A stretch of 62,767 bases of DNA from Guillardia theta CCMP2712 (taxonomy: Eukaryota > Protista > Cryptophyta). Below are positions 6,101 to 56,419 of the stretch, piece after piece. How positions within the stretch are numbered: position 1 is the first letter of the stretch; each line of letters opens with the position of its first letter. The stretch is from positions 278,457-341,223 of the forward strand of contig NW_005434613.1 in the NCBI RefSeq assembly GCF_000315625.1, read 5' to 3'. The notes beneath the pieces are model-generated. The model saw only the letters and a list, made by a program, of their open reading frames with translations, was not told the DNA's origin and searched no databases. A program made the position numbers and the translations under genes.

Positions 6101-6379
6101 TGACGAAGATGGCGAGAGAGGAGACGATGAGAAGGAGGAGGATACAGCTTGTTGGTTGAGAGACGGAGAGATTGGGAGATCATAGGTCAATCGAATTGAG
6201 GGAACTTTACATCCATTGGAGCAGGTGCAAGACTGGATTCAAAAACATCGTATGCCATTTCAATGAGATCACTACGATCGCCATTCGATGTTGTAGCTAG
6301 AAACATACATTGTGGCTGGATCTTCTCCCTATTGCAGTGATGGGGATTGTTGAATTCCTCATTCGTGCGTGAAAGAGAG

Positions 6380-12300: not shown

Positions 12301-13405
12301 GGCGTCGAAGAGTTTCAACGGAACTCTCAAGGAAGTCACAATGCTAACTGTCGTCAAAGTGCTCCTGCAGGCCAGCGACGTCTACCTGACGTCGATGGTG
12401 CCGTCAGAGCAGCCAGTCTCCTTCTCTTCCTCCAACATGAAGATGATGACCCTCCGGCTCAGCCCCGACCTGCAGCTCTACAACTTCTCCACCTGGACTT
12501 ACTCGTTCGACCTGTCGTTTGCCAAACCCGATGGCGAGCTCCTGCTTCAGAGCGGAGACCTTGGGCTGTACGTGTTGGAGATGTACTCGTTCTGGAGCAT
12601 GGACCAGCTGCATGCTCTGCAGTACATTCATGTCTCTCAGAGGCCCATCCTACTCCATCCCCTCAACCCAAGTCAACCCTCGGCAACCTCTGCCTTTCAA
12701 TGCTTGCCCAAGGGCTCTCTCTGCCTCAAGTTGAGACTTTCTTTCCCTCGGGTGCAAGTCAACGGTACCGGCAACTACCTTGTCGACCTCAGACTTCAGC
12801 TTGCGTGCGTCTTGTGGACCACCGACGTCAGCTCCTGGTCCTTCGATGCCTGCGAGCTGTCATCCCTGAAGGAGGAGAACCAGACGTTTCTCTCTGCTAC
12901 CTGTGCATGCTCCAGGTCCGGCACCCTTGTCGTGGTGCAGAACCTAAGGCATTCGGAGATCAACCCGGCGCTGGGGCTGATGCCGAAGAAGAGGCAGGTT
13001 GGAGAATGGCCCGTCGTGACCACCTCACTCTTCGCACTGCTCTCCTTCTTCCTTGTCGCGCTTGTGATGTTCAGGAACAACAGCCTGAACAGCTTCTTGG
13101 ACGAGCGGAATGAGCCCAGCAACGGGATTCAGCATGAGTTTCAGACGCTCATCGGAGATGTAGTGTTCGGAACCCTCGGCAACGAGGAGAAGAAACAGAT
13201 TCCGAGCATGACCACCTCACACTACAAGAAGGAGTACTCGAGGTTGCACGACGACTACTTGGACGACATCTGTCAGAGCAAGAACTTTTATCACTCCATC
13301 TGGTTCAAGGAGGGAGTCTTTTGTAAGACCCTTAGGAAGTTCGACTCAAAGGGCATTAGGAGGAAGAAGTGCAAGGTGCCTGACACGTCTTACAAGCTGA
13401 CTTGA
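6380..13405 (+). CDS. Giant cell-surface protein A: signal peptide, GCC2/GCC3 (ephrin-receptor-like) Cys-rich repeats, IPT/TIG-like, REJ/PKD-like, GPS-like domain, one TM
   Basis: ORFs 6347-9229 and 9257-13405. Repeats of C..GTYK...G...C..CP...C.C..G(Y/F); REJ motifs EGGNRT..LNASTSQDLD..FQWSC and PPSGGQCTVSPTTG..FTCSC..W..PLSY; GPS-like CVLW..W...C...CAC; TM WPVVTTSLFALLSFFLVALVMF. The junction phase near 9225/9275 is unresolved. Confidence 0.8.
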
Positions 13406-26222: not shown

Positions 26223-29200
26223 ATGGTTGTGCTTCATTCCACAACTTTGATGCCGATGTCACTGCGGTTTCAAATGAGGCCTTTGGTCGTGGCTTTATTG
26301 TCAATGTACATGCATATACCAGGAGTTGTCACTACGCCGTGTGACGACTATTGTAATACCATCTCGTTGAAGACTGCTTGTCTTCAATGCATGATCAGTA
26401 ACACTGTTGCAAACTGTTTTTGCTATTGGAAAGATGCAGGAAAGTCCGGGAATAGTGCTTGTTCCGAAGCAAGTGGTTGCACTTGTCCATCCAATTCAGG
26501 TGGATCTTTTTGCGCGTGCAACTCCGGATACGTCAGCAATGGCGGAACGTGTACTGAGGCAGGCTGTGGAAACTTGCTACAATGTCTTCCAACCCAAAGC
26601 AGCTGTGCGATTACGAACGCAGATTCATCTTGCAATTGTACAGCAGGTTACACACTATCAGGTACAGCTTGTATTGCTTGTGGATCAGGAACGTATAAGT
26701 CGAGTGCGGGCTACCAAGCTTGCACAAGTTGTCCTATAAATTCGATCTCTCAGCCAGCAAGTGTCAGTTTGACCAACTGTTCATGTAATGCTGGATATTA
26801 TGGGCCATTGGGCGGACCTTGTACTCCATGTGACTCTGGGAAATATAAAAACGAATTGGGTTCAGCAGGTTGTGTGAGTTGCCCAGAAAACTCCTTCTCA
26901 GTGTCAGGTTCGAATATCAGCGGCTGCTTATGCAATAAAGGTTACACTGGCTACAATGGAGGCACTTGCCTTGCTTGCCCCCAGGGTACGTATAAAAACA
27001 CTTCGGGATCTGCACCGTGCTCAAGCTGTCCCGTATTGTCAACATCCAGCGAAGGCAGCGTCAATATTTCCTTGTGCAAGTGTAATTCTGGAGCATATGG
27101 TAACGACGGTTCAAGCTGTGTTGCCTGTGAGCCAGGCACGTACAAAGATGCTATTGGCTCCAACAATTGCACCAAATGCCCACAATTCAGTACCTCAAAT
27201 GCTTCCAGCGTGTCAAAAGATTTGTGCTATTGTGTTGTAGGGTATGAGTATTCCTCAGGATCCTGCACCGCTTGTCCGATGGGAAAATATAAATCGAACA
27301 TTGGAAATTTTAACTGTAGCAGTTGCCCGGACAATTCCACCACGATCAATGAAGCCAGTCCAGCTGCAAGCAACTGCACTTGCATGGCAGGGTTTTTCGG
27401 TCCACAAGGTGGAACATGTCAGCCTTGTCCACCAGGCACTTTTAAAACTACCCCAGGATCACATGCCTGTATGTCTTGCTCAGATTCAGAAATTTTGAAT
27501 TCCACAGATGGTCAACCAACATGCGAGTGTAATATTGGATATTTTCGAAATCTTTCAGGACTTTGTGACGCCTGCCCGGAAGGATACTATAAGAGTATGG
27601 TCGGAAACTATGACTGCACTCCTTGTCCTCCTAACTCAACGTCGTCTAGAGGAAGCAAAGCTTATTCTGATTGTCTCTGTAATTCTGGTTTTACTTCTGT
27701 CGAAGGCTTGGAATGCACTCCATGTGCGGCTGGAACATTCAAGAAATTGATTGGATTTTCAACTTGCATACCTTGTCCTTTGAATTCATATTCGTCTGCA
27801 GCAAGTATATTATGTCAATGCAACGCGGGATACATTGACAACGGAAACGATAGCTGTATTGCATGCCAAGCAGGGAAATATCGAAGTGCTGATTTGCTAA
27901 ATTGTACAGATTGCCCTGGAAATCTTACCTCTGATTTGGGAAGCTCGTCTATTGAACAGTGTACTTGTGATTCTGGCTCGTATTACTCCATCGATGGATT
28001 CTGTAAATCATGTGAAGCTGGAAAATATAAAGCGTTTCCAGGAAAGGATGACTGCATGACGTGTTCAGCCAATTCAACATCAAATCCAGGAGCCATTGCT
28101 TGCGTTTGCAAAGAGGGATATACACCTGTCAATGAACAATGTGTGGCATGTGATACGAACACATACAAAGACATCATCGGAAATCTTTCTTGTAACCTTT
28201 GTCCAAACACCATGATCTCAAATTTTGGAAGCATTTCCGTCAACGATTGTCAATGTGCTCCAGGATACACAAGCACACAGAATCAAAACTGCACCAAATG
28301 CATAGCAAACACGTACAAGAGCGAGGCAGGGTCGGCCACCTGCACGGCCTGTCCGGGCAACGCCAGCAGCCCGCCAGGCAGCGACGCGGTCGAGGCGTGC
28401 AGGTGCAACGCGGGCTACACGGGGCAGGACGGCGGGGAGTGTAGGGCGTGCGAGGCGGGGACGTACAAGAGCGAGGCAGGGTCGGCCAACTGCACGGCCT
28501 GTCCGGGCAACGCCAGCAGCCCGCCAGGCAGCGACGCGGTCGAGGCGTGCAGGTGCAACGCGGGCTACACGGGGCAGGACGGCGGGGAGTGTAGGGCGTG
28601 CGAGGCGGGGACGTACAAGAGCGAGGCAGGGTCGGCCAACTGCACGGCCTGTCCGGGCAACGCCAGCAGCCCGCCAGGCAGCGACGCGGTCGAGGCGTGC
28701 AGGTGCAACGCGGGCTACACGGGGCAGGACGGCGGGGAGTGTAGGGCGTGCGAGGCGGGGACGTACAAGAGCGAGGCAGGGTCGGCCAACTGCACGGCCT
28801 GTCCGGGCAACGCCAGCAGCCCGCCAGGCAGCGACGCGGTCGAGGCGTGCAGGTGCAACGCGGGCTACACGGGGCAGGACGGCGGGGAGTGTAGGGCGTG
28901 CGAGGCGGGGACGTACAAGAGCGAGGCAGGGTCGGCCACCTGCACGGCCTGTCCGGGCAACGCCAGCAGCCCGCCAGGCAGCGACGCGGTCGAGGCGTGC
29001 AGGTGCAACGCGGGCTACACGGGGCAGGACGGCGGGGAGTGTAGGGCGTGCGAGGCGGGGACGTACAAGAGCGAGGCAGGGTCGGCCAACTGCACGGCCT
29101 GTCCGGGCAACGCCAGCAGCCCGCCAGGCAGCGACGCGGTCGAGGCGTGCAGGTGCAACGCGGGCTACACGGGGCAGGACGGCGGGGAGTGTAGGGCGTG

Positions 29201-32200
29201 CGAGGCGGGGACGTACAAGAGCGAGGCAGGGTCGGCCACCTGCACGGCCTGTCCGGGCAACGCCAGCAGCCCGCCAGGCAGCGACGCGGTCGAGGCGTGC
29301 AGGTGCAACGCGGGCTACACGGGGCAGGACGGCGGGGAGTGTAGGGCGTGCGAGGCGGGTTTGTTCAAAAATCGAAGTGGTTTTTTCTCGTGCGTCAATT
29401 GTTCAGCTGGTTTTTTTTCAACCTCGATTGGTTCTTCATTTTGTTTTGCTTGTGAACCTGGCAAGTATAAACCTGATCCTGGTCCGGGAACTTGCAGTGA
29501 TTGCTTGGAAAACTTCACCACTGTGTCTGGTGCAACTGGATTGATAAATTGTCAATGTAAAAGGGGATATACGGGTCTGGATGGTGGAGATTTCTGTGTT
29601 GCCTGTTCCATTGGACAATACAAAGAAAACACGGGTTCTGGTGCATGCATAATTTGTCCTGTGGGAAAATTCAATATTCAAGAAGCGGCCTCCACGTGCA
29701 ACCTTTGCCCTATTGCGACATATAAGGATTTCACTGGAGTAGGTCTGTGTGTTGATTGTCCAGGAAATTTTACGAGCAACAAGGGGAGCACCAACATCAC
29801 AGATTGCAAGTGCATACCTGGATACACTGGTAATGACGGTGAAGTTTGTTATCAGTGTCCCATCGGAACGTATAAAAACATCAGGGGCTCAGCTTCTTGT
29901 CAACAATGTGAAGTTGGAACATATCAAACAATGACAGCAATGACTGTATGTTTAAAATGTGATGCTGGAAAATACAAAAATCAAACAGGCAGCGGGCTCT
30001 GTGCCGAATGTAATGAAGGAACATTTACAATTCAGAAAGGGCAAACCACCTGTGAAATGTGTCCACCATCAACATACAAAGATTGGATTGGAGCAGGAAC
30101 GTGCAAAAACTGTCCGCTATCATCTACAACGACAGAAGGAGCAACAACTATCCTAAACTGCGAATGCAACAAAGGATATACAGGAAACAACGGAGAGTTA
30201 TGTATTGAATGTCAAGAGGGAAAATATAAATCAACAATTGGACCCTTTAACTGTACATCTTGTCCGGGCAACGCCAGCAGCCCGCCAGGCAGCGACGCGG
30301 TCGAGGCGTGCAGGTGCAACGCGGGCTACACGGGGCAGGACGGCGGGGAGTGTAGGGCGTGCGAGGCGGGGACGTACAAGAGCGAGGCAGGGTCGGCCAC
30401 CTGCACGGCCTGTCCGGGCAACGCCAGCAGCCCGCCAGGCAGCGACGCGGTCGAGGCGTGCAGGTGCAACGCGGGCTACACGGGGCAGGACGGCGGGGAG
30501 TGTAGGGCGTGCGAGGCGGGGACGTACAAGAGCGAGGCAGGGTCGGCCACCTGCACGGCCTGTCCGGGCAACGCCAGCAGCCCGCCAGGCAGCGACGCGG
30601 TCGAGGCGTGCAGGTGCAACGCGGGCTACACGGGGCAGGACGGCGGGGAGTGTAGGGCGTGCGAGGCGGGGACGTACAAGAGCGAGGCAGGGTCGGCCAA
30701 CTGCACGGCCTGTCCGGGCAACGCCAGCAGCCCGCCAGGCAGCGACGCGGTCGAGGCGTGCAGGTGCAACGCGGGCTACACGGGGCAGGACGGCGGGGAG
30801 TGTAGGGCGTGCGAGGCGGGGACGTACAAGAGCGAGGCAGGGTCGGCCACCTGCACGGCCTGTCCGGGCAACGCCAGCAGCCCGCCAGGCAGCGACGCGG
30901 TCGAGGCGTGCAGGTGCAACGCGGGCTACACGGGGCAGGACGGCGGGGAGTGTAGGGCGTGCGAGGCGGGGACGTACAAGAGCGAGGCAGGGTCGGCCAC
31001 CTGCACGGCCTGTCCGGGCAACGCCAGCAGCCCGCCAGGCAGCGACGCGGTCGAGGCGTGCAGGTGCAACGCGGGCTACACGGGGCAGGACGGCGGGGAG
31101 TGTAGGGCGTGCGAGGCGGGGACGTACAAGAGCGAGGCAGGGTCGGCCAACTGCACGGCCTGTCCGGGCAACGCCAGCAGCCCGCCAGGCAGCGACGCGG
31201 TCGAGGCGTGCAGGTGCAACGCGGGCTACACGGGGCAGGACGGCGGGGAGTGTAGGGCGTGCGAGGCGGGGACGTACAAGAGCGAGGCAGGGTCGGCCAA
31301 CTGCACGGCCTGTCCGGGCAACGCCAGCAGCCCGCCAGGCAGCGACGCGGTCAAGGCGTGCAGGTGCAACGCGGGCTACACGGGGCAGGACGGCGGGGAG
31401 TGTAGGGCGTGCGAGGCGGGGACGTACAAGACTGAGGTTGGTCTTGGCAATTGTCGGAATTGTCCTGTCAATCTTACCAGTTCTCCTGGTAGTGTTTCTG
31501 TGAAGGGTTGTTTTTGTGATGTTGGGTGGTTTTCGATTAATGTGTCGGTACAAAACTTTTGTTTTGTTTGTCCGGTGGGTACTTTTTCGAATATTTCTTC
31601 TTCGTCTCACTGTTTGGATTGCCTTCCTGGTTCATATTCTTCCACATTCGGTTCGTCCAATTGTAGGTCATGTTTAGCTGGACACTTTCAGGATGAATCT
31701 GGCTCAACGTTTTGCAAACGTTGCTCTCACAATCGGACAAGTGGAATTGGAAGTTCATCGTTAGAGCATTGCAAGTGCCTTCCAGGCTTTTCTGATATCA
31801 ATGGTTCTCATTGCGATCAATGTCCATCGGGAATGTTTCAACCTCACATTGGTGCTTCGCAGTGTATGAGTTGTGATGCTGGATCATTCCAATCGCTTCC
31901 TGGACAGACGTACTGTGAATGTTGTCCACCAGGAACTTTCCAAAATTCATCAGGTGGTCATTCCTGCTTGCCGTGTGAGGAGGGAAAATACAACGATAAG
32001 AGCAATCAGACATTCTGCCAAAATTGCGCAGCAGGATATTACAAGAATTGGACCGGAGAAGGAGAATGCACTGAATGCAAAGAAAATACAACATCCAAAA
32101 TCGGGAGCAAAATTGAATCAGATTGCAAATGTAAGCCAGGTTATGAAAGAACAAACAATACATGTCAACAATGCAAAACGAATTATTACAAAAATACGCT

Positions 32201-35200
32201 TGGAGACACCTTGTGCGAACAATGTCGAGAAAACATGCAAAGCACTCAAGGGAGCGACGCGGTCGAGGCGTGCAGGTGCAACGCGGGCTACACGGGGCAG
32301 GACGGCGGGGAGTGTAGGGCGTGCAAGGCGGGGACGTACAAGAGCGAGGCAGGGTCGGCCAACTGCACGGCCTGTCCGGGCAACGCCAGCAGCCCGCCAG
32401 GCAGCGACGCGGTCGAGGCGTGCAGGTGCAACGCGGGCTACACGGGGCAGGACGGCGGGGAGTGTAGGGCGTGCGAGGCGGGGACGTACAAGAGCGAGGC
32501 AGGGTCGGCCAACTGCACGGCCTGTCCGGGCAACGCCAGCAGCCCGCCAGGCAGCGACGCGGTCGAGGCGTGCAGGTGCAACGCGGGCTACACGGGGCAG
32601 GACGGCGGGGAGTGTAGGGCGTGCGAGGCGGGGACGTACAAGAGCGAGGCAGGGTCGGCCACCTGCACGGCCTGTCCGGGCAACGCCAGCAGCCCGCCAG
32701 GCAGCGACGCGGTCGATGCGTGCAGGTGCAACGCGGGCTACACGGGGCAGGACGGCGGGGAGTGTAGGGCGTGCGAGGCGGGGACGTACAAGAGCGAGGC
32801 AGGGTCGGCCAACTGCACGGCCTGTCCGGGCAACGCCAGCAGCCCGCCAGGCAGCGACGCGGTCGAGGCGTGCAGGTGCAACGCGGGCTACACGGGGCAG
32901 GACGGCGGGGAGTGTAGGGCGTGCAAGGCGGGGACGTACAAGAGCGAGGCAGGGTCGGCCACCTGCACGGCCTGTCCGGGCAACGCCAGCAGCCCGCCAG
33001 GCAGCGACGCGGTCAAGGCGTGCAGGTGCAACGCGGGCTACACGGGGCAGGACGGCGGGGAGTGTAGGGCGTGCGAGGCGGGGACGTACAAGAGCGAGGC
33101 AGGGTCGGCCAACTGCACGGCCTGTCCGGGCAACGCCAGCAGCCCGCCAGGCAGCGACGCGGTCAAGGCGTGCAGGTGCAACGCGGGCTACACGGGGCAG
33201 GACGGCGGGGAGTGTAGGGCGTGCGAGGCGGGGACGTACAAGAGCGAGGCAGGGTCGGCCACCTGCACGGCCTGTCCGGGCAACGCCAGCAGCCCGCCAG
33301 GCAGCGACGCGGTCAAGGCGTGCAGGTGCAACGCGGGCTACACGGGGCAGGACGGCGGGGAGTGTAGGGCGTGCAAGGCGGGGACGTACAAGAGCGAGGC
33401 AGGGTCGGCCACCTGCACGGCCTGTCCGGGCAACGCCAGCAGCCCGCCAGGCAGCGACGCGGTCGAGGCGTGCAGGTGCAACGCGGGCTACACGGGGCAG
33501 GACGGCGGGGAGTGTAGGGCGTGCAAGGCGGGGACGTACAAGAGCGAGGCAGGGTCGGCCAACTGCACGGCCTGTCCGGGCAACGCCAGCAGCCCGCCAG
33601 GCAGCGACGCGGTCGAGGCGTGCAGATGTAATTTTGGGTTTTTTGGTCAATTCGATTCTGTTTGTACTCCATGTTTTCCCGGTACGTATAAATCTGCTTT
33701 GGGATCACAGGCTTGTTCAAATTGTCCATCTCATTCAACAAGTGGCTTGGCCTCCACTAAACGTTCGGATTGTGCTTGTGTTCCTGGATTTTTTTCATCG
33801 TCCATTGGCTCAGATCTGACATGCAGTCCTTGTTTTACTGGCACGTACCAAGATAAGTCTGGATATTCATTTTGTTTCACTTGTCCTCACAATTCTTCTT
33901 CTTTGGAGGGCAGTTCAAGTCTTGACAAATGTCTCTGCAAGCCCGGATATTTTGGGCCACCTGAAAACTGCATTGAATGTCCTTTTGGTACATTCAAGAA
34001 TACTTCAGGCTCTTTCGAATGTTTCAATTGTCCTCCGTTCTCATATTCCGATAAGGGTGCAACAGATGTTACAGCGTGCAAATGTAATCTTGGATTCTAC
34101 AGGGGTGGTAATGATTTGTCATGCATTGCATGCAAAGTTGGAAAATACAAGGACTTTCTTGGTGATCAGAGTTGCACTGCATGTCCAACGTATTCGACCT
34201 CTTCGACAGGCAGTGTAAATGCAAAAGATTGTACTTGCATCGAGGGCTATTTTGGACCCCCTGGCGGACCTTGTATTCAGTGTGGTTATGCAAAGTACAG
34301 CGATGCTCTGGGATCATCAACCTGTACAAGTTGTCCTGATAATTCGTGGGCTCCGCAAGCAAGTGCACGAAGATCTGCTTGCATGTGTATCGCGGGGTAC
34401 ACTGGTCAAGATGGTGGACCATGTAATGCATGTCCCGAAGGAAAACACAAAGAATCCAATGGCTCAACACCGTGTTCATCATGCAGCCATCTTGCCACAA
34501 CCATCTGGAATGCTTCGCAAGAGATTTGCCTGTGCAATGCCGGCTACACTGGTTCAAACAACATGTGTATGGCTTGTTCCCCAGGCAAGTACAAAAACAC
34601 CATAGGATCAGGTGATTGTCTTGCATGTCCTGCTCACACCATCTCGTTGAATGCAAGCAGCGATGTAGCACAATGCATTTGTTCTCCAGGTTACTTCCAG
34701 AAGAATGGTCAATGTATGCCATGCAGTTTCGATACGTACAAAGCAGTGGCAGGTAACGGAGAATGTGCCATGTGCCCGGTGAATTCTGGCACATTATCCG
34801 ACGGAAGTCACTCGATTGACCAATGCTTTTGTAAGCCAGGCTATTTCGGATCGAATGAAGCTTGCTCAGCTTGCCCCGCTGGGACGTATAAGACATTGTT
34901 GGGTACTTCAGGGTGTTCGATCTGTGAGAACTTCACAACCTCGAATCCTGGCAGTGTTTCAATCAGTGATTGTGTATGTATAGAAGACTACTTTCTTGAA
35001 AACATGCAATGCAAACCGTGTTTACCCGGCAGTTATAAGAATGTAAGTGGAAACGGACCTTGCACTTCTTGTGATAAGTTGTGGTCGGTCAAGTGCTTGC
35101 CTGTGATCAAATCGGTCAACCCTCAATTTTGCGAAGCGGAGGGTGGAAGCATGGTGTACTTTGAGCTTAGTTCTGGTGCAAATCAGATCTCTTGGATACG

Positions 35201-38200
35201 TTTTTCAGAAACCCAGACACGTTCCACTGCAACGTTCTTGAGTCCGACTTTGATTGCTGCGATATGTCCTGCTTCAGATGGAAAATTCGGAGCGACTTTA
35301 GGGTTACTTCTTGCTTCAGATCTTCAGCCAATTTCAAGATTTTCATTTTCTTACTTGACTCCAAGGCCAATCGTTTCTCCCCAAAATATCTTGAGAAACG
35401 GGACTGTAGTCAATGCAACGTTTTCTTTCTGGCCAGAAGGATTCCCGAAATCGTGCGGATTGTCATTCGGACCAGGATCTGACTGGGATTACCATGTTAT
35501 GAAAATGGACACAATTTACCGCGCAAGTGGTCTCCTCAGAATTCTCATAAAATCAGCCCAGGCACAGCTCAGCTTCAATTGTAGTGGTCAGTTGATTGAT
35601 ACACGGGTTGTGGTCAACGTTTTTGACAATATGGTAGTTTCTAACATTATCAATCGGAATGGAAAATGTACAATCACAAGCAGATGTAGTCTATCTATCG
35701 TTGTCTCCAATCCCTCTCCCATGTTGCAAGCAGGAAACATAGCAGTCAGCATTCACGGCACAAAGTACTCCACCAGCTTTGAAGGCCCTCAATATTCCAT
35801 CTTGACGCAGGTACGTGCATTTGTTTTCCCTAGATAGCAGATTTTGAATGACTCTTTGTAAAACAGGTACAGGAAGCCCAAAGCGATTATGCAATTGTTA
35901 CTATCGATATTCCTCCCTTGCTTTCATTCGATACTTTCATCTGTACGATGCATCCCACAAGTTTCTACCAAGATCCAGTCATGGATCAGATCGCTTCATT
36001 TAATCTTCCAATTGCAATACCGGCTGCTGAGATTCTGAGCATTTCTCCTTCGTCAGGACCGATTTTGACAGAGACCGTCGTCTTGATCGTACTGAGTTCC
36101 TTTCCAATCGCTGCAGACTTCAAAGTGACGGTAGCAGGGAATTTAATGCCCAAACCTGAAGTACAATTTGCAGATGAATCAGGGATATCTTTGAAGGTAT
36201 CATTGTATTCTGAGCAATCCGGAATTCAAAACGTCATCGTATCATCCTCTGGAATATCGGCAAACACGAGTTTCCTTAGCTTGATGCCTCAATTTAAAGC
36301 AAATTGTTTAGGAAATTGTTACATTGTAGACTGGGCTGAGACAGAGCTTCAAGTTGCGGTATATGGCTTTCCCATAGAATTGAACCATTCAATTTGGATT
36401 GTACAGGGAACAGAAAAAACAAGATCTTCTGTCTCTGCATCTGTCCCCGACAATGGAGCCAACATACTATATGTACAAGTTTCTTTTTCGGATGCTCTCG
36501 AGAATGCCTATGATACAACTTGTTTTCGTGTTTCACAGACTCATTTTGATTACAATGCATTTTTTTGCACTCAGTCTTACAGGAAGCCTCGCATAAGTCG
36601 CTTGAATTTCAACAATTTGGGAAACAGCCTGAGCATAACTTTCGATCAGGTTGTGGATATCAGCTCAGAGATTAATGATTGTGCAAAGTATTTCCCAAAG
36701 GCTAATCTCACCAGTTTAGGAAAAGGAAGGTTGTGCTCATGGTACGATTCCTCCACGCTTCAGGTTGTATTAGGGAGTGATGCCTCAGTCATGGTATCTC
36801 AATCCTTGCTGTTCAATGGAAACCTGAGCATGATGGGAAGGCTCATTAAAAACTCAGAGGGTATGGTTGCTCGTGTTCAGCCTCCTTCTCTTGCCTCCAC
36901 ACCTTCGATCACATTGGACGGTCCCTTCGAGGTTGCCTCTTGTGATTCCGCGACAATAAGAGCGACTTGTAGCTCGTCAAGACCACCCATCTTTTCTTGG
37001 AGGATACTGAATTCCGAATTTCACACAGGATTGGTGCAAAACGTGACAGGAGACACAGTAGCTTTGAAGGGTATCTACCTTCAGTTGGGGATCAGTTACC
37101 AAATCGTTGTCACAGCTTACACATTTTTGGGGGTGTCTGTAACCAGCAAAGTTCACTTGCTTCAAAGAGCTGCTGAGCCAGTGCCCCTTGTATCTATTGT
37201 AATGCCACCTCCACCGTACAAGAGGCCAAATTCCTTCTACGTAACTGCCAAGTCTGAATTTTCTTCCTGTGCTCCAAGCAGAGCGACTCTCAACTATACC
37301 TGGTTGCTCTACAATTCACAAAGTTCCAACTCATCGATACAAGCAAAAGGTCCTGAAATGTTGATAAGCACGATGAACCTGATCCCTGGGTCTTCATACA
37401 CAATATCACTTCTGGTGCAGTCTGCCTTGAGCTCAAGTCTGGTACAGCAGACAATCACCATTGCACGTTCTGGGGTCAAAGCGCTGATAAAGGGAGGAAA
37501 TCGTACAGCCTACAGAAATCAGGCAGATTTTCTCATAGATGGATCAGCATCGTATGACATGGATTACGTGGGCATAACGGCGGGCTTGAGCTTCGAATGG
37601 ACATGTGCTGTAGGAAATGGCCCCTGTCGCTATCTAAATGGCTCAAAGTTGATCCTTCCTTACGTGCCATACCTCAACCTCAACCTCTACAGTCTGAATC
37701 TTCAAGGCACTAGTGCTTTGCAAATCACATTGATGGTGAGTAAAGGTGCATACTTCGATTCGCAAACAGTCATCTTAGAGCTCTCCGACGCCCCCGTCCT
37801 ACCAGTTGAGATATCTAGTAGTGTCAACAATCAACTGTGGGTATCTTTGAAGGCAGTGCCAGTGACAAACAACGCCAAGTATTCATGGAATGTCAAAGAT
37901 TCTGCGAATAACCTCATGAATCAAGTCTTGACCAAAAACAATGCATGCCCAGCCGGTATAGATTCATATGACCTGGTTATCTTGAACCCTTCCAAATTCT
38001 TGCCGCGCGGAAAGTATGCAATTTCCGTCGAAATGCGATATGACAATCTGGTTGGAACTGCCTCGATACCTTTCAGAGTGACATGGCCGCCCTCTGGTGG
38101 TCAATGTGCGGTCAGTCCTACCTCGGGGGTAGAGCTCGAGCAAGACTTTCAAATCAAGTGTATCTCATGGACCTCCGATGATTTGCCCTTGTCATATCAA

Positions 38201-39949
38201 TACGGCCTTGGTCGGATCGGTTCAGCAGAGATTTCTTGGACGCCTCAATCGTACTTGAACGTACACTCTGCAATCTTGACAAACGGAGATTATGGTATGG
38301 TTGCGTCGATCATCGACAATCTTGGAGGAGCTTCTCTGTCGGAAACGACGAACATCAGGGTACGGCAAAAAGAATTTGCAAATGGGACAAACTTTGAGGA
38401 CGAGCTGTTTGCAAACATTGCGAAGGCGATAGATCAGTTCAACAGCCTTGGATTGCTTGGGCAGAGTTTGCAACTTTCCAATAGTGCCCTTCTCAGTTTG
38501 CAGGAAAATCAAAATCGCCGCCTGTTGGCATCGTCCTTGGCTTATCGGATGCGTGTGAGAAACATGCTTCTTGCAAAGATGGCAGGCGGAACAGTCAACG
38601 ACAAAATGAACACCAGGACGATGTCATCATCCCTGGAGACAGTAAGCAATGCACTGCAACAACCTTCGGAAATCAGCCCGAATGGATGCTCAGACGTGGG
38701 ACAACTGTTGGGGACCTGTACGACGTTCATGACTGTTGACTTCTTGCGTGGCGATGGGATCTTTGCTTTTCTCTCTTCGTTCGACGCATACCTAATCACA
38801 GCCAAGAACTTTGACAAACCTATGAGACAAGCCTCTCTCATCTCGGTGTTGAACAACGTGCTGAATGCTTCCACGTTATTGTCGACCTCGATGGTGCAAA
38901 CTGAGCAAGCTTTTCATCAGGCCCTTGCCATGTTCACGGTGCAGGTCCAGCGGTGCGGAGTCGACCTGAGCCAAGAAGAAGTCAATCTAATGGAGCAAAG
39001 GGTGTCTGTTGATTTCGGGGCTTTCAGGGCCTTGTCAAACCTGAGAAGCCAAGACTTGTCTATCACGCTGGTTCACACGAAGGAGTTCTGGTTCTTGGAT
39101 GACTTGTACAACCTGGGCTATACTGTTGTGTCAAACCCTTCAGTCTTGTATTACCTCTACTCCCTGCCAGACCTGAAAATGGTGTGGGACTGCAAGGGTT
39201 CCGACTCGCCCTGTTTCAGCGTTCAGGTAGATATGAACCGAAGTACAGCTGAACAAGCCCATGATCTCTTGCTCAAGTGTGTGCTGTGGAACGCTCAGAG
39301 TGCAGCATGGGACTTCAAGGCCTGCACGTTGGGATCCATCTCTCTACAGGCAGAGTCAGCGACAGCCCAGTGCCTGTGCAACAGCGTGGGCTCAGCCTTG
39401 GTCATCCAAGAGAACCTGGACGCCTCCGGATTCTTCAACATCAACAACAAGTTCAACCTGCACCATATTTTTGAGTGGCTGCTCCTCACTATCATCGTTC
39501 ACTTTTGTGTGGCGACCTTCGTCGTCGTGGTCACCTTTCGTGGAACTCTCAACTCAATCCTCTCGTCCTCGTCCTTGAACACTGGCCGTCCTCACCATCG
39601 CAGGGCTTCAGACCGGAAGATGCTCTTCCTCGAGTATGAGATCAAAGGAGAGCTGGGAATGTTGCAACATGTCAAGGAACCAGGAGGGCAGGAAGAGGAG
39701 GAGCATAGACGCTCTTCTCCAGCTGAGCACAACTCAGTGAGTTGTACATGCTGCAAACTGAACAGACAGACAGTCAAGTTTTCCACGCAGGATGCTGCGG
39801 GGAGCCATGCTGTCTCCTCCTCCCCATCCCAGTGGTTTGAAGAATGCCAGGTCGTCTCGTCTCCTCACACAGTCGTCGAGCGGAGGCAGAGAATGACGCT
39901 CAGGTTTAGGAAGAGTCAAGTCGCTGAGCCCGTCATGTTGTCTGAATGA
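26223..39949 (+). CDS. Giant cell-surface protein B (~4,550 aa), paralog of protein A: signal peptide, dozens of GCC2/GCC3-type Cys-rich repeats, IPT/TIG-like, REJ/PKD-like, GPS-like, one TM
   Basis: ORF from 26223 joined by a phase-0 GT-AG intron (35811-35866) to 35867-39949 (ILTQ|VQEAQSDY..DIPPLL). Same domain order as protein A: KGGNRT..IDGSASYDMD..FEWTC, PPSGGQCAVSPTSG, RRLLASSLAYRMR, CVLWN..WDFKAC..CLC, TM WLLLTIIVHFCVATFVVVV. Confidence 0.88.
28311..29359 (+). repeat. Coding tandem array 1: 7 x 150 bp (50 aa)
   Basis: Unit TYKSEAGSA(N/T)CTACPGNASSPPGSDAVEACRCNAGYTGQDGGECRACEAG; units start every 150 bp from 28311; ~73% GC (110/150 by hand count). Confidence 0.97.
30261..31431 (+). repeat. 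Coding tandem array 2: ~7.8 x the same 150-bp unit
   Basis: Near-identical to the array 1 unit. Confidence 0.97.
32253..33625 (+). repeat. Coding tandem array 3: ~9.1 x the same 150-bp unit
   Basis: Near-identical to arrays 1 and 2, with E/K and E/D variants. Confidence 0.97.
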
Positions 39950-48499: not shown

Positions 48500-51400
48500 G
48501 TCGTGATCACGGACAGTCTGCAACTGGCCGCTGCCGGTGTCCTGCACAAGGGAACGGATCAGTCTTCCAGTGCAGTCTGCTGCTAATGTGATGATGATGG
48601 GTGAGGAGGAGGTGGCTGACCTCTCGCAGAACCTCGTTGATAGAGTCGATCGTGTTGGGGTTGACCCGGTTCAGAATCTGATCGAGGATCTCCTGCAGTC
48701 ATTGAAAGGGCATCAGCAGGTGAAAGCAAATCGATGATGATGGAGCTTCCAGACCTTATTGGTGGTGCAAAATTGCCCTGGGAAGCCACGGTCATTCGAG
48801 GCCGAATCAGGTCGATCAGCTCACCGTATGCATTCTTGAAAAACTCCACGTAATTTCGCTTGTAGAACGCCTCCTGTGACGCAAAGGATGCTCAGAGGAA
48901 AAGGTTGACGCAAGGGATAATCAGGGGGGACTGTCAGTCGGAGCCGTACGTTGAGCTCGTAGTAATCGTGCACTTCGATCTCGTCGTCGGAGTCCTCTGC
49001 ACTGCGGGTCAGCCCTAGTGATACATCATAGGGGTACAAGAGCACCGTCAGAGTCCCTGCTCTCCTCGGAATCGTTCTTCGCCAACTCCTGCTTGAAGAT
49101 CGCATGAGTCACGCAGGAGCTCGATACATCCTCTCCCTCTCTCTCTTTCCTTCTTTCGGAAGGTAGGACTGCTCGAATCCATATCCTGCCAGACATTTCA
49201 GGAGAGGGATCGGGCGAGCGGGACAGCAGCACCCATTCATCACTCAGAAAGTAGTCGGAGTAACCAAAGTCCGTCTCAGGGTAGAGGTCGCTATCTCTCG
49301 AGCTTTCGTCCTGTATCAAAGTAGTTCATGACACAAGCAGTCATCGGGCCACACTCGTACAGAGCCCGCGGACAAGGAGCTTTGAGACTGCATGTTTCGT
49401 CGCCTCTGCTTGACACTCTGAAGAAGTTCAAGTCAGAAAGCTCATCAGTGAGCTCCAGTTCAGACCAAGAGCTCCTTGATGACGTCGACAAGCTTCTCAA
49501 GCAACACGTGAAAGTTTTCTCGCAGGTATTCTTACAGCAGAATCAGTTGAGGGCACCAGGATCCTCCTGCAACTTACGAGGCAGCACGTTGAATCCGAGG
49601 GAGAGGACGGAGGACATGGCTGAAAGTAGCCAACCCAGTGAGCTTATCCTCGCCAGGGTGGATCGAAAGGGAGCGGATATGGAGCAGGGTCCAGACATAC
49701 CATATACGAAAATCTTGCGATCATATTGTCGTGGGGTGACTGCCTTGTCGTTGAGCCGGTCGAAGGCGCTGAAGACAGTTTCGAAGAAGATCTGTGGAAA
49801 GACATGGTTGAGGGATAGCAGGCCACGTCATCAGCCTGACCTTGAGGTTGCCCTTGGAGTCCAAAGCTTGCAAGGCAATCGACGGGTTGTAGTAGAGCAT
49901 GTGGAGGGAGAGCCTGACAAAGTGTCAAACGAGCGGTGTGAAGACTTGAGCTCGCCCCCACCTGTGCAAACTCAACTGGAAGCCCTCCGAGGTTGAGCCC
50001 CTCTGATAATTCGAACAGATCAGCCCGTTCGCAATGTCGTCTACATATCCATCGACGTATCCTCCTGCTTCATGTTGAGAGGCGGAGGGGAGGGAGTATC
50101 GGAATAGGCTTACCAGACTCATCCTTGCAGTTCAAGAACATGAAGCTCAAGAGCGAGGCTGCACGAGGACAGAAAGCTGACATGGTCGTCAGACCAGCAC
50201 TCTGTCCAGTACAGCAAAGTTGCGCACTTTCAGCTTCTGGAATATTACAGAGATACTTGGCAGCGGCCGTGTAGACCATCTTGTGTCTGTGTCAATTCTT
50301 CCAACACAAATGAGAAGATGAAAAAAGTTACATGCACATTCATAGGATCAGAAACAAATCTCTTTGTGCTGTGCATGTAGTTTGAAACAACACTGAAAGC
50401 GTAGTCAGAATGATCATTCTTCATCAATGGTGCTCTTGCATACCTGTTAAAGTTGTCGAGCACTGAATAGCCGACTCTATGAAACGTCTCGCAAAGAGGT
50501 TTGAAGAGATTCCAAACAGAATCCGTGATTGACGGGGCACAATAAGTCAAGTAGTTCAAAATTTCCTTTCGACCAAGTCAGAATGTGAGGAAAAGCAAAT
50601 TCGTCATCATCGCTCTACCACTCCATCTGCAATGAATTGTCCCATGCTCTCTTGATTCGAAAACATTCTATTCAACACTTTCAAAATCTCATTGTCGATC
50701 TGAAAGCCAAACGACTCAATTCATAGTCGGATTGATCATTTGATAGAGCAATGAAGCACCTCTCCATATAGGTGAGGCAAATCCTTCATGGCATTCAAGA
50801 GGCTCAACAACGCTGAGATTGAAACGGACAATAAGACAGTCTTGCTCAAGTGCGCGGCTTCAAAATTGAGATCAGCCAGAATCAGTGAACAGAAACATCA
50901 CTCTCACATTCAGAACTGTCCAGGATAGTCTGGCACAGATTCTTGCAGATACTGGATGCAAGAGGGAGGACCTATAAAGAAGGTCAATCCCATGAGCATT
51001 TCAATGTAATACTTCACTTCTTCAGGAAATCTCTCCACCATGAAAGCTGCAACTGATACAACTTCATCGTGTTGAATTGACTGCTACAAGGTCAGCTTTG
51101 GAGATTGTGGAGAGCGAATTTTGACCTGCATGAGAGAAATGATGTTTGGTAGGACTTCAGCAATAAGTGGACGAAACTCTTCCAAGTCCTGTACCGAAAC
51201 AATTCTTCAGAATCGTACAGGAAACAACAACGAAACTGTAGATTGCATGACAATCTTCTTACATCGGCAGATTCCATGAGATTCTTCAATGACAAAGCTG
51301 CTTCATACTGCACAGGAACCTCGGAGTCTTTGAGGCATTTTGCCACCTGCAGTGATGAAGGAGGGGGCACATCAATATGACCAACCTCTACAAATATTCC

Positions 51401-54165
51401 AGAAATAGAAGATCCAGAAAAAAACGACAACGCAACCGATCAGTATCCTCTGGTACCTTGCGGACTATTGAAGGAAAGCTGCTCATCTTATACCATCTGC
51501 TCACTTCATGTTAGAAGTTCTTCGTTTGCACCCTAAAGGCGACCTGTCATACTCTCCGACAATCCAACAAGCACATGCTCGAAGGTGTGGTACGTCTGAC
51601 TCAAGATCCTTTACAGCATACTTCTTGATGATTGAGATGATCTATCAAAATGGAATCACTTCGCTCCGAGATCGAATAAACTCGATGATGACTGCTGCTA
51701 CTACTGTCTTCGCTTACCTTGTCATAATATTTCCCCTCGCGCGCGTATGAAACTTTCATCGCCCCAATTGCATAGAAAATTCCTTCCTTCAAGCAATGAT
51801 TCCTCTCCTAAAGGACCACCATTACACATCCATTGTGACATAACAGAGTAATTTCCTCAGGCTCTGCGTCGGCATACGCTGTCAAAGACATTTTACAGTA
51901 GGACAAGAGTGTAGAAAGCGTCCTGCTCAAAGTGAGATAACATCATAGGCACTCAGTTTTTCTGACTTCGAATGCTCGTCAATCAAATCCATGAGAAAGT
52001 GCCTTGCTGCAATCCGAGGGTTGTACATTTCCTCCTGCTTCGTTGTCAAAGTCCGCCTCCTATCTTGTTCCTCTTTCTCGACTCCCTCTCGCAGCAATAT
52101 CTACCTGATCGTCGTACTTCTTCATAATGTATTCCACCGGATCCTCCCGCCAAAGATTCTCATCATGTGCTCCATGCCACATCGCAGGCACCACAACATG
52201 GTAGAACAGTGGTTTCAAGTTGGGTTTGAGCACGTTCCAGCATTTTCGAACTTTCTGACATTCCGAGAGGAGTCCAAAACAATCCGAATGAACCTGATGG
52301 CAGTGAAAAATCTGTGGCCACCTCTAAAAGCCATTTACCTTCTTGGGAATGAAGTTTCCATTGAAACTCTTTTCCATGAGAACGACAACAGTCTTCATGA
52401 CTTCTGGGATGCACGACTGTAATACCTGTTGCGATGCATGAGTCGACACCAAATTTAAGAGATCCTGTTCTATCGTTTGAACCTTGAAGAAAGAATCATA
52501 TGCTTTTCTTGCTTTGGTGTCACATTTCTTGTAGAATGACGTCGCCTTTGTGAAAAACCTCACCTGGTATCAGCAGCAACAATATCAGTATGCATCATCG
52601 TTTGAAAATATCGTAGCTCTACCGCCCATTTCTTTGGAAGCCAGAACTGGATCAGAAAATCGTCTTCTCCTGTTGGTGGGAGCTCTCGTTGAATTACAGT
52701 AGCCAAAAACCTTCAATCTCCATCAACAACACCAGATGCTTGATCATGGCGAATGCACTAACCCAGTAACAACGTCTGACTGATCTTTCCATATGGAAAT
52801 GTCCTGATTTGGTTCCGCTTCTTCGCTCCAGTCCCAAGAAGGATTGGCACGATAAAGAATCTGCAGGGCATTCCCAACCTTCAGAACCGGCACTCAGTTT
52901 TGTTCTTTTTCACCTTGCAAATCATCTTCAGCACAAGGGCACCATGGGGGCTAGCCACAGGTCCATCGATTGCTGCTTTGCCAACAGTCATCATCTGCCA
53001 TGGTTCCATAGTTACCATCGATATCTTGTGACCAAATAGAGTCAACCGGAATGAAAAGCTCGTAGATAAGAGGGGAAATCTTGTCTCGAGGAAGACCGAG
53101 TTCCACCTGAAAAGAGTCTCAATAGAGCCAAGTGACATGAATCACATTGTTTTGCACCTTATAGATCACATCTAGAGCAGCACACATTTGAGGTATTGAA
53201 GCAGCTCCCAGTGTCAAATATTTCTTGAGCTGTTGAGAAATCAATCACTAGGGATCTATTGTGAAAACACGAGAATACCTGACCCACAGCCTGAGGTATC
53301 CAATCTGCAGACTCTGTCTCTGCCATGAACTTCAAACAATCCGCTAGTAATCTGATTGAAAGGAATGAGAAAGGTCGTCAATAGCTTTGAAGAAAACCTT
53401 TTCAATTGATCAGATTCAAGGTGAATGACAGTTTCAACGATGTGTTGACGAATGATCAATCTGTCGGCATCAGAAACTCTATACTGCAGAGCATCGCTAT
53501 CGCCTTCCGCCTGTTCTTTACTCCAGGCCTTCTTCATGCAATTCTTGAAATAAACCGCGGCGGACATACGAACCTGACATTTAATGTCAGATAAAACTAT
53601 GAACTTCATCCGCGTTTATTACCTCCACGCTCACAGCTGATGTGGTAATGATTTTCAAGAGGCATGGAAGAAATCCAGGCTTTTGCCTCAGAATGTCCAA
53701 ATGCTGGATTTATCGTGCATCAGATTCTATGGAAGCACCGTTTGAAATTGTCACCTTCTCAGCTTCCTGTCGAATATTCTGATCACTTCGTAAGGTTGCG
53801 GCCAGTAAATCATGCATGACCTGAGCAAATTCAGCTACCACAAACATCAACGGTGAATCTCTCAAGTTTCCACACTTGCAACATCTGCAGCTCATTCATG
53901 TTGTCCCCGCCGTGACTTGCCGCCTGCTGCATTGACATGTCTGATCCTCCACTGCCAAGTAGATGTCAGAGATTGAATGCTTCCTGTTAACATGGCACCG
54001 TAGTTGGAGAGCTCCACGAACAATAGCAAAAGTTTTTCTGTTGGGATGCTGTGTCTTGATGAAACCATGCTCCCTAATCATTCGAAGATGATTTTCCCTC
54101 CCATTTCCTGAATATATAATCCCTATCAAAAGGTGTATGACAAACAGATTCCTCCAGGAAATCAT
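48500..54165 (-). CDS. Importin-beta family protein (importin-7/8, Nmd5/SAD2-like) with signal+LRGG leader and RWD-like C-terminal segment; intron-dense (3' end approximate)
   Basis: IBN_N-type LLAATLRSDQNIRQEAEK and QVRMSAAVYFKNCMKKAW; KEGIFYAIG, PHLRARACWIVGEY, CLKDSEVPVQYEAALSLKNL, YDRKIFVY; downstream VRLRLTVPPDYPLRQPFPLSI. Confidence 0.78.
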
Positions 54166-54991
54166 GGATTCTGATTGTTTCCGGAGTCTTAATGTCGACC
54201 AAGGTGCTTCATAAGCTCGATGGTATCAGCGTTTAGTCCGGAATGGTGGACATTTTCAAGCAGAAATATGTTCAAAGGTCTGCGAAACCCTTATCTTGGA
54301 CTCGTACTTGCAATGTCCTGGGTCAATATCAAATGCTTTCCACCACACCTACCCAGATAGCTTGCAATCAAACAGCTCTCAAGGCAACTGCATGAGATAC
54401 GGCAACACTCATTCTGAACGAAAAAACACGTGCAGCTCCCATGTCGAAGGATGCAAGCTTCACGGACCAAACAAGACAATGAAAAAACAGACGGAACCAG
54501 CACAATCAAGAAAAGGCGGTGTTTGTGAGCGTTGAAGCAAGGGATGGGGCAAGGATGATGGCGGTAGTTGGGACGATGTGGGTTTGATCGGTGCGCACAG
54601 GGATCTTTCAACACCGCAAGGGGGGAACTGAAGAAAGAGGAGACGAGGAAGCATCTCACGAGGGAAGGAGGAAGAAGAGTGAGAGAAGATCATGTTGCTG
54701 TGGAGGAGGGGGATGGGCAGGAAGGGGGAAAGACATAAATGAGATGCGCTGCTTCCCGCCATGCGCCCTCCCTCCTTCTGGTTGTCCTAGATCTTGAAAC
54801 CCTCCTAGATCTAGAACGTAGGATTCTAGATCTAGGACCGTCCTAACTAATTCATACTAATCATTTGGGCCGGGCCGGCCGGGGCGGCCGGGCCCGGCGC
54901 CGACCGTACCGTCGGAGTCGGCCCGGGCGACGGGTGACCGTACACGGCGGCATGGTCGGACCGTCTCACAGTGACTCCGCGCTGACGGAAT

Positions 54992-55315: not shown

Positions 55316-55807
55316 ACGTTCCATCCTCCCCCCGAGTTTCTGAAATAGTACGTTACATCGGACGTCAGAAAGTCACACAAACAAGAGAATGTCAGCAGAG
55401 TTCCAAGTCAAGATACGATGATACAACGTCAAGTTCACAGTCATGCTGAGTGGGCAATAACCATTCAAGGATTGTCCGTTCCATGATCTTGACACGTCTC
55501 ACTCAGTCCTCGGACTGGCACTACCGTACTGTATACTAGGCTATCCCGCGGGCCGCACCGTGCTCCAACACTGTGACTGGCCCTCAGAGGGGGCTTGGCA
55601 CTGCATGAATCATAACAGGCGCTGGCATGTCTCAGGCTGTGTCCGATCAGGAGGGTGAGTCTGTGGCGGCGGCCCGGGCCGCCCCGGGCGGCGGGCCGCT
55701 TCGCACAGCCGCGGTCCGAGCACTAGTTGAAACCGGGCCTCAGCCTCGAATTGCCCGCATGTTTGTGGTTTGACCTCTCTTTGTTGCCCGACCATATACT
55801 AAACCTA

Positions 55808-55838
55808 GTCCTCGTCCTCGTCCTCGTCCTCGTCCTCT

Positions 55839-55878
<40 letters not shown>

Positions 55879-55946
55879 GATCCTCGTCCTCGTCCTGATC
55901 CTCGTCCTCGTCCTCGTCCTCGTCCTGATCCTCGTCCTCGTCCTGA

Positions 55947-55981
<35 letters not shown>
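55808..55981. repeat. (CTCGTC)n/(CTGATC) hexanucleotide microsatellite
   Basis: Tandem 6-mers; source of poly-LV/DE/RT ORFs. Confidence 0.93.
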
Positions 55982-56419
55982 TCTCCTTGTTCCGCTTGTT
56001 CTGCTTGTGCTCCTTGTACTCCTTGCCTCCTCCTCACTGCGCAGCCTTCTCCTTTTACCTGTCAATCCTCGTCCCATATGTCCTATCCTCGTCCTCTGGA
56101 TTTTGCAGTGCTTCTGTTCAAGTCCATCCTTTTTTTTTTTTTTCATGATCTCGATCATACTTCTCGTGTTCCTCATCTTTTTGACGAGCTCAAGCTGTCA
56201 CCAACAACACACTTCTGCTCTTACTCTGAAGTGTACTCACCTCCTCACTCTGTTTGTTCACCTTCCCATGTGTAATTGGTATGCAGAGCATCTCTTCAGC
56301 AAGAGGAACTCTACTTGATCTGATCATGTCATCAACTCCTCTTGGGTGTCACTTTGTTCCACTGCCGAGATTGACAATCATGATCGCTGCATTCTCGTGA
56401 CAGACGTTCTCAGGTACAT

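Follow-up and report, generated by a model that had tools for sequence, protein, structure and literature searches.

Our analysis of a 62,767-nt stretch of Guillardia theta CCMP2712 DNA (contig NW_005434613.1, positions 278,457 to 341,223; hereafter the window, with its first letter as position 1) indicates that the minus strand carries a gene for an importin-7/8-like karyopherin with a spliced N-terminal leader. In our best explanation of the data, to which we give a probability of about 0.6, the product is a host-encoded karyopherin that enters the periplastid compartment (PPC), which is what remains of the cytoplasm of the red-algal endosymbiont, and that most likely acts there as an import receptor of the nucleomorph. 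The parts of this explanation differ in strength: targeting of the protein to the PPC is likely, and the odds that it is a true nucleomorph import receptor are about even.

The gene opens with a minus-strand ATG at position 54165, which begins a 55-codon first exon (54165-53999). The predicted elements of its 5′ end are:

53999-54165, minus strand: exon 1, an open reading frame (ORF) with its translation, comprising the start codon, a signal-peptide-like core, a basic linker, L-Q-L, and two bases of the codon for R
53952-53998, minus strand: intron 1, 47 nt, GT..CTCTGAC..CAG
53876-53951, minus strand: exon 2, which completes R-G-G of LQLRGG and continues for about 15 residues before the conserved importin N-terminus begins (Met at 53899)
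53821-53875, minus strand: intron 2, 55 nt, GT-AG
53755-53820, minus strand: exon 3, the first conserved helix of the importin N-terminus, which aligns with importin-7 residues 8-28

Spliced in frame, exons 1-3 give the peptide that an earlier note on this DNA had proposed from the same two introns (53998-53952 and 53875-53821); the sequence matches that proposal, and the comparative evidence described below backs the exon model. The Arg codon of LRGG is split by intron 1 as CG/T, and the LQLRGG box is present only after splicing; in the absence of splicing, the exon-1 frame runs for 89 codons to a stop at 53896. Intron 1 is credible because its length, 47 nt, is the modal intron length of the G. 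theta genome (PMC6260743, Table 1). The remaining introns of the gene are 46-55 nt long and end in CAG, and their donors vary (GTGTGG, GTGACA, GTAATA, GTTTTC, and GTATTC); GTGCCA, the donor of intron 1, is unremarkable against this background. In addition, four of these introns are confirmed by colinearity with a spliced ortholog from Hanusia phi, the source of the nearest protein outside the genus (P0003; EukProt EP00960 P016002). Taken at the level of sequence, the gene model with the spliced leader exon is very probably correct. A word search with the exon-1 ORF returned zero matches, and an annotated G. theta protein for this gene turned up in none of the searches.

The predicted N-terminus has the layout of a bipartite leader. 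Specifically, by a hydrophobicity heuristic, a positive residue precedes a hydrophobic core of 13 residues, for which the Kyte-Doolittle mean over 11 residues is 2.98; the small residues S-G-N-G come next, and then a spacer that is net basic. Position +1 would be occupied by G, N, or R, and no aromatic residue is present at any plausible signal-peptidase site. The LQLRGG box begins 52 residues after the Met and ends at residue 58, about 15 residues before the conserved importin N-terminus. By this heuristic, the signal-peptide-like start and basic linker described in the earlier note are borne out.

The box belongs to a recurrent leader-end motif of the G. theta genome. We searched the nuclear assembly (87,145,349 bases in 669 pieces; the nucleomorph genome is not included) for a leader class defined by an L-x-L-R-G-G box located 25-115 residues downstream of a Met with an ensuing hydrophobic segment, directly before the conserved protein. 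The L-R-L-R-G-G pattern gave 353 matches, as compared to 255 when the pattern was read in reverse and 193 with a pattern for the reversed peptide. Among the first 40 true LRLRGG sites in contig order, 24 are preceded by an in-frame Met and hydrophobic segment, in a leader of 20-115 residues, versus 1 of 20 reversed-peptide controls (Fisher p = 2.7e-5); for the exact variant LQLRGG, a leader precedes 7 of 20 sites versus 1 of 20 controls (p = 0.044). The window leader fits this LRGG-ended class in box position, in hydrophobic maximum, and in closeness to the conserved protein. The LRGG leader that the earlier note had singled out is thus one example of a wider motif, and LRGG may be a cleavage site for a ubiquitin-type protease.

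Two other carriers point to the destination of the class. One is a classical EF-1alpha (L103, C3:1063800-1065300), whose sequence starts immediately behind an LRLRGG-ended leader, and the other is a starch-binding CBM20 protein with a leader of this type (L114, C12:492171-493671). The cryptophyte PPC contains 80S ribosomes and starch, and both proteins therefore fit the PPC. Judged by these shared features, the window leader belongs to a real leader class, the cargo of which looks periplastid.

A hydrophobic N-terminus alone cannot tell apart the routes that start with one, and the leader might instead send the protein into the endoplasmic reticulum (ER) and secretory path, into the plastid stroma, or into a membrane as an anchor. 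However, no role is known for a soluble HEAT-repeat karyopherin in the ER lumen, in the stroma, or outside the cell, and the EF-1alpha and starch-binding carriers have the same leader type. The lack of an aromatic at the plausible signal-peptidase sites also argues against the stroma: in cryptophyte bipartite leaders, one residue decides between PPC and stroma, and an aromatic is required for stromal import (Gould et al. 2006, as quoted in PMC2674657). We consider such a misassigned destination very improbable.

The remainder of the gene supports assignment of the protein to the importin-beta family. Searches were run exon by exon, with the spliced Hanusia phi protein P0003 used as a stand-in for the joined protein, and gave the following features downstream of exon 3:

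53623-53703, minus strand: exon 4, start of the IBN_N domain, with CAG/GT flanks, a weak IBN_N match (profile positions 7-28), and a tblastn match to importin-7
53398-53573, minus strand: exon 5, main exon of IBN_N, the RanGTP-binding N-terminal domain, with importin-7-like matches
53351-53279, 53229-53158, 53106-53047, and 52994-52914, minus strand: exons 6-9, separated by introns of 46-52 nt
52084-52245, minus strand: Cse1-like central exon, the block most conserved with importin-7/8
50251-51340 (about 51340-51254 and 50565-50251), minus strand: further putative HEAT-repeat exons; the gene extends further downstream

In particular, exon 5 matches Pfam IBN_N (PF03810) with an E-value of 4.2e-7 and a score of 30.3 bits (cut-off 21). 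Exons 6-9 are contiguous and colinear with P0003 residues 64-87, 90-113, 114-133, and 134-160, with 65-93% identity. The Cse1-like exon is 41-43% identical to octopus importin-7 residues 341-394 and also matches both canonical G. theta paralogs described below, and tblastn with the exons in 50251-51340 gives matches in colinear order at importin-7 residues 503-532 and paralog residues 603-691. By tblastn with individual exons, the importin-7-like protein of Octopus is matched in order at residues 8-46, 40-103, 341-394, and 503-532, with the conserved N-terminal helix of the window gene aligning from importin-7 residue 8 onward. In a large HMMER search with the IBN_N exon, the cluster of importin-7-like protein (Octopus) was the only named full-length match. 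Two further comparisons gave weaker signals: P0003 matches the solved Xenopus importin-7 (6n88) colinearly but weakly (E = 0.36), and the HEAT profile match on the window gene is weak (E = 0.16). Together, the IBN_N match above cut-off and the colinear importin-7 matches support the view that the gene encodes an importin-beta-family member that is apparently closest to importin-7/8, in agreement with the identity first suggested for it.

The window gene has two leaderless relatives in the same genome. A search with the Cse1-like exon identified two paralogs, on scaffolds C19 and C55, which are its nearest in-genome relatives:

C19:556000-565999 (L006): canonical importin-7/8 paralog
C55:97000-106999 (L007): canonical importin-7/8 paralog

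Over about 650 residues, both are 25-29% identical to the Octopus importin-7-like protein, and a KNYEYK block is present in the C19 copy. Both begin directly at the conserved first helix, with no hydrophobic extension and no leader. Each has one very long exon (840 and 657 open codons), as compared to the many short exons of the window gene. By these comparisons, the window gene is a third, fast-evolving importin-7/8-like copy in G. theta. The earlier note had advised a check for a leaderless paralog, and two are now found, both on other scaffolds; it had also suggested that internal Mets could give a cytosolic isoform, for which there is no apparent need, because the leaderless C19 and C55 paralogs already cover the cytosolic job.

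Orthologs beyond Hanusia phi were sought by several means. A word search with P0003 returned only itself and P0002, an ORF from a metagenome contig, and no further cryptophyte orthologs; a word search with the IBN_N region of P0002 returned only itself. When metagenomes were scanned with two peptide patterns that are conserved in both Guillardia and Hanusia, 102 matches were obtained, and 0 of them were relatives. By comparison with the G. theta exons, P0003 is apparently frame-shifted at both ends (the first ~20 residues resemble exon 4 translated in a different frame), and it therefore gives no reliable ortholog N-terminus. P0003 also lacks about 15 codons of exon 5.

Comparison with a close metagenome relative provides the evidence that exon 1 is translated. 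The HMMER search with the IBN_N exon gave two short ORFs on metagenome contigs L008 (2.1 kb) and L009 (4.1 kb) of ENA project PRJEB17505, which align with the window at about 94-96% identity. Exon 1 differs from this relative by 7 substitutions, 6 of which are at third codon positions (binomial p = 0.0069); 5 are synonymous, and the other two are I>V and M>I. The IBN_N exon (exon 5) has the same pattern, with 8 of 10 substitutions at third positions, and exon 3 has zero substitutions. In the 300 nt 5′ of the ATG, substitutions are distributed 1/4/6 over the three phases, and the third-position excess is absent. In intron 1, there are 2 substitutions, both at second positions of the read-through frame. 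The ATG, the GT and AG of intron 1, and the junction codons are identical in the window and in L008 and L009. Because the substitutions cluster at third positions of exactly the exon-1 frame, exon 1 appears to be coding, and, on this pattern, it is under coding selection.

Two other sources of these patterns were considered. Antisense coding was rejected as the source of the third-position bias, since no plus-strand ORF spans the substituted positions. The unspliced 89-codon ORF is disfavoured, since substitutions in its read-through part are mostly at second positions.

The same comparison bears on the alternative that exon 1 is an upstream ORF (uORF) or part of the 5′ untranslated region (UTR), and that the protein is a divergent cytosolic importin translated from a Met in exon 2 (53937, 53931, or 53899). 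The conserved importin N-terminus starts only in exon 2, where these Met codons are available, and the 260 nt 5′ of the ATG are as conserved as exon 1, which shows that conservation alone does not mark coding sequence here. Nevertheless, the third-position bias falls in exactly the exon-1 frame (p = 0.007), and the substitutions in the read-through part of the unspliced ORF do not follow it; the splice signals are conserved, and the intron is of modal length; joining the exons in frame produces LQLRGG, a box that in this genome is associated with leaders; and two leaderless importin-7/8 genes are already present. We therefore regard translation from exon 2 alone as quite unlikely, and retain the spliced leader exon. 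The conserved 5′ stretch itself is best described as follows:

54166-54425, minus strand: conserved stretch just 5′ of the ATG, probable 5′ UTR and core promoter

This 260-nt stretch diverges from the relative by 3.7-4%, versus 10.5%, with indels, for the next 300 nt. It contains two tiny uORFs, both out of frame, and its conservation is consistent with its probable role as 5′ UTR and core promoter.

The two metagenome contigs share every difference from the window in and 5′ of exon 1 but diverge from each other downstream, and in exons 4-6, L009 is nearly identical to the window and L008 is not. A Guillardia-like alga with two haplotypes or strains, or with recombination, may account for this pattern. 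The 312-residue "protein" P0002 (L008:779-1717) results from a prokaryote-style gene call, made on a cryptophyte contig whose introns are still present: three introns are read as coding, several exons are translated in the wrong frame, and genuine importin sequence is confined to residues 178-235.

From these features we infer a signal-peptide function, a PPC location, cleavage at LRGG, and a transport function for the protein, and we propose the following route. Exon 1 of the host-encoded gene would specify a bipartite leader, in which a signal peptide is followed by about 30 residues of basic spacer and then by LQLRGG, which resembles the tail of ubiquitin. The leader would direct co-translational entry of the importin-like protein into the ER lumen, from which the protein would pass across the periplastid membrane into the PPC. 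Removal of the leader would probably take place at LRGG or close to it, some 15 residues ahead of the point where the conserved importin N-terminus begins. Once inside the PPC, the protein would most likely behave like importin-7 in other systems, picking up highly basic proteins (ribosomal proteins and histones, for example) and delivering them to the interior of the nucleomorph. We know of no importin role in the ER lumen or outside the cell; for a karyopherin that has entered the ER, the PPC is therefore the only destination with a nucleus to serve. The protein would most likely serve basic proteins destined for the nucleomorph, as their import receptor or at the least as their chaperone.

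A survey of other transport genes in the nuclear assembly, in which all searches give lower bounds, does not reveal a leader-bearing partner set. As far as seen, the window gene is the sole predicted leader-bearing karyopherin among the nuclear transport genes surveyed. A 29-base Ran pattern identified one Ran gene, which is leaderless; a shorter Ran pattern gave zero matches in the assembly, and a protein search with the Ran exon found no Ran paralog. The leader was not seen on the single importin alpha, on the RanBP1-domain genes, or on six further IBN_N genes, and a leader-bearing Ran, RanBP1, or importin alpha was not found in the nuclear assembly. An FG-repeat protein with a Ran-binding domain (Nup50/Nup2-like; L119, C6:454400-456800) has no visible leader.

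The leaderless state of Ran, RanBP1, and importin alpha in these searches weighs against a nucleomorph import receptor, and so do several other points. Almost no nuclear-pore proteins have been found for nucleomorphs (Irwin and Keeling 2019, PMC6411479), and the structure that a karyopherin would cross is therefore unclear. The bare LQLRGG motif is not enriched genome-wide (56 matches versus 51 for the control pattern), and LQLRGG is therefore informative only together with a leader. The coding signal in exon 1 comes from a single related lineage and 7 substitutions, and all 7 are common to L008 and L009, which makes them one comparison, not two.

These points leave room for a protein that resides in the PPC and is not a transport receptor: a chaperone that shields basic proteins, or a protein with another Ran-independent role, with the nucleomorph envelope being crossed in some other way. 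Importin-7 has a documented chaperone activity towards basic proteins, and the window protein is very divergent from canonical importin-7, with few exons that match. The apparent lack of a canonical pore complex in nucleomorphs (PMC6411479) and the results of the Ran, RanBP1, and importin alpha searches in the nuclear genome would fit such a role. However, the RanGTP-binding IBN_N domain still scores above the Pfam cut-off and is subject to purifying selection, and Ran could be encoded by the nucleomorph genome, which lies outside the searched assembly. We consider a non-transport role unlikely, and continue to prefer the reading of the protein as a nucleomorph import receptor.

The published record on nucleomorph transport is sparse. 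Rae1 and Nup98 are the sole transport-linked proteins so far assigned to nucleomorphs (Irwin and Keeling 2019, PMC6411479). A re-evaluation of the nucleomorph-encoded proteome revealed no new pore factors and one tentative transport-linked candidate, and accessory transport factors are expected for the nucleomorph (Zauner et al. 2019, PMC6559170). The literature that we searched contains no description of a periplastid or nucleomorph importin, with a prior listing in the predicted periplastid proteome of Curtis et al. 2012 being possible, and contains nothing usable on a nucleomorph Ran. The window gene is most likely a further periplastid-targeted paralog of a cytosolic factor, as far as sequence comparison can indicate. 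It might also be the first soluble nuclear transport receptor assigned to the nucleomorph, in which case importin-7-type receptor-mediated import would persist there, at a nucleus for which hardly any pore proteins have been identified; we give this stronger claim slightly less than an even chance.

A host-encoded karyopherin with a periplastid leader would provide a concrete handle on nucleomorph import, since its location could be determined and pull-downs could recover its cargo and partners. Such a handle would allow a Ran-driven, receptor-mediated route at the nucleomorph to be tested. If the assignment is true, the partners of the protein would lead to the nucleomorph gate and its Ran system, or would reveal that both can be dispensed with. 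With this gene, the ubiquitin-tail leader box also gains a spliced LQLRGG variant; the box may mark the site at which periplastid leaders are removed.

Elsewhere in the window, a long simple repeat is present upstream of the gene (55723-56275), which, according to the strand and frame in which it is translated, reads as (RT)n, (DE)n, or (LV)n. Pfam matches in very long open frames at 6347-13405 and 26223-39949 include REJ domains and ephrin-receptor-like cysteine repeats, a content that would fit giant genes for surface receptors.

Four known systems come closest to the window protein. The first is importin-7/8 (RanBP7/8; yeast Nmd5 and Sxm1), with which it shares an IBN_N domain, a Cse1-like central block, and putative HEAT repeats, and with the animal member of which, importin-7, it is colinear over at least residues 8-690. 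Unlike importin-7/8, it is extended at its N-terminus by about 58 residues, which include a signal-peptide-like core and LQLRGG, and it is very divergent, with about 40% identity in the best exons and undetectable similarity in many others. Unlike the C19 paralog, it has no recognised KNYEYK-type block.

The second comprises the nucleus-encoded periplastid proteins of cryptophytes described by Gould et al. 2006. The window protein resembles these in having a predicted signal peptide, a transit-peptide-like spacer without an aromatic +1 residue, and a leaderless host paralog; it differs from them in that its PPC location is a prediction and in being a karyopherin, none of which is listed in that class in the parts of the literature covered by our search. 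The third comprises the other LRGG-leader carriers. The window protein resembles them in having a signal-peptide-like start, a spacer of tens of residues, and L-x-L-R-G-G before a conserved protein; it differs from them in that its box is the LQLRGG variant, is built across a splice junction, and lies about 15 residues from the conserved domain.

The fourth comprises Rae1 and Nup98. Like these proteins, the window gene product is a candidate component of nucleomorph transport, and would be a further one. Unlike these proteins, which are pore-associated and of endosymbiont origin, it is predicted to be a soluble receptor.

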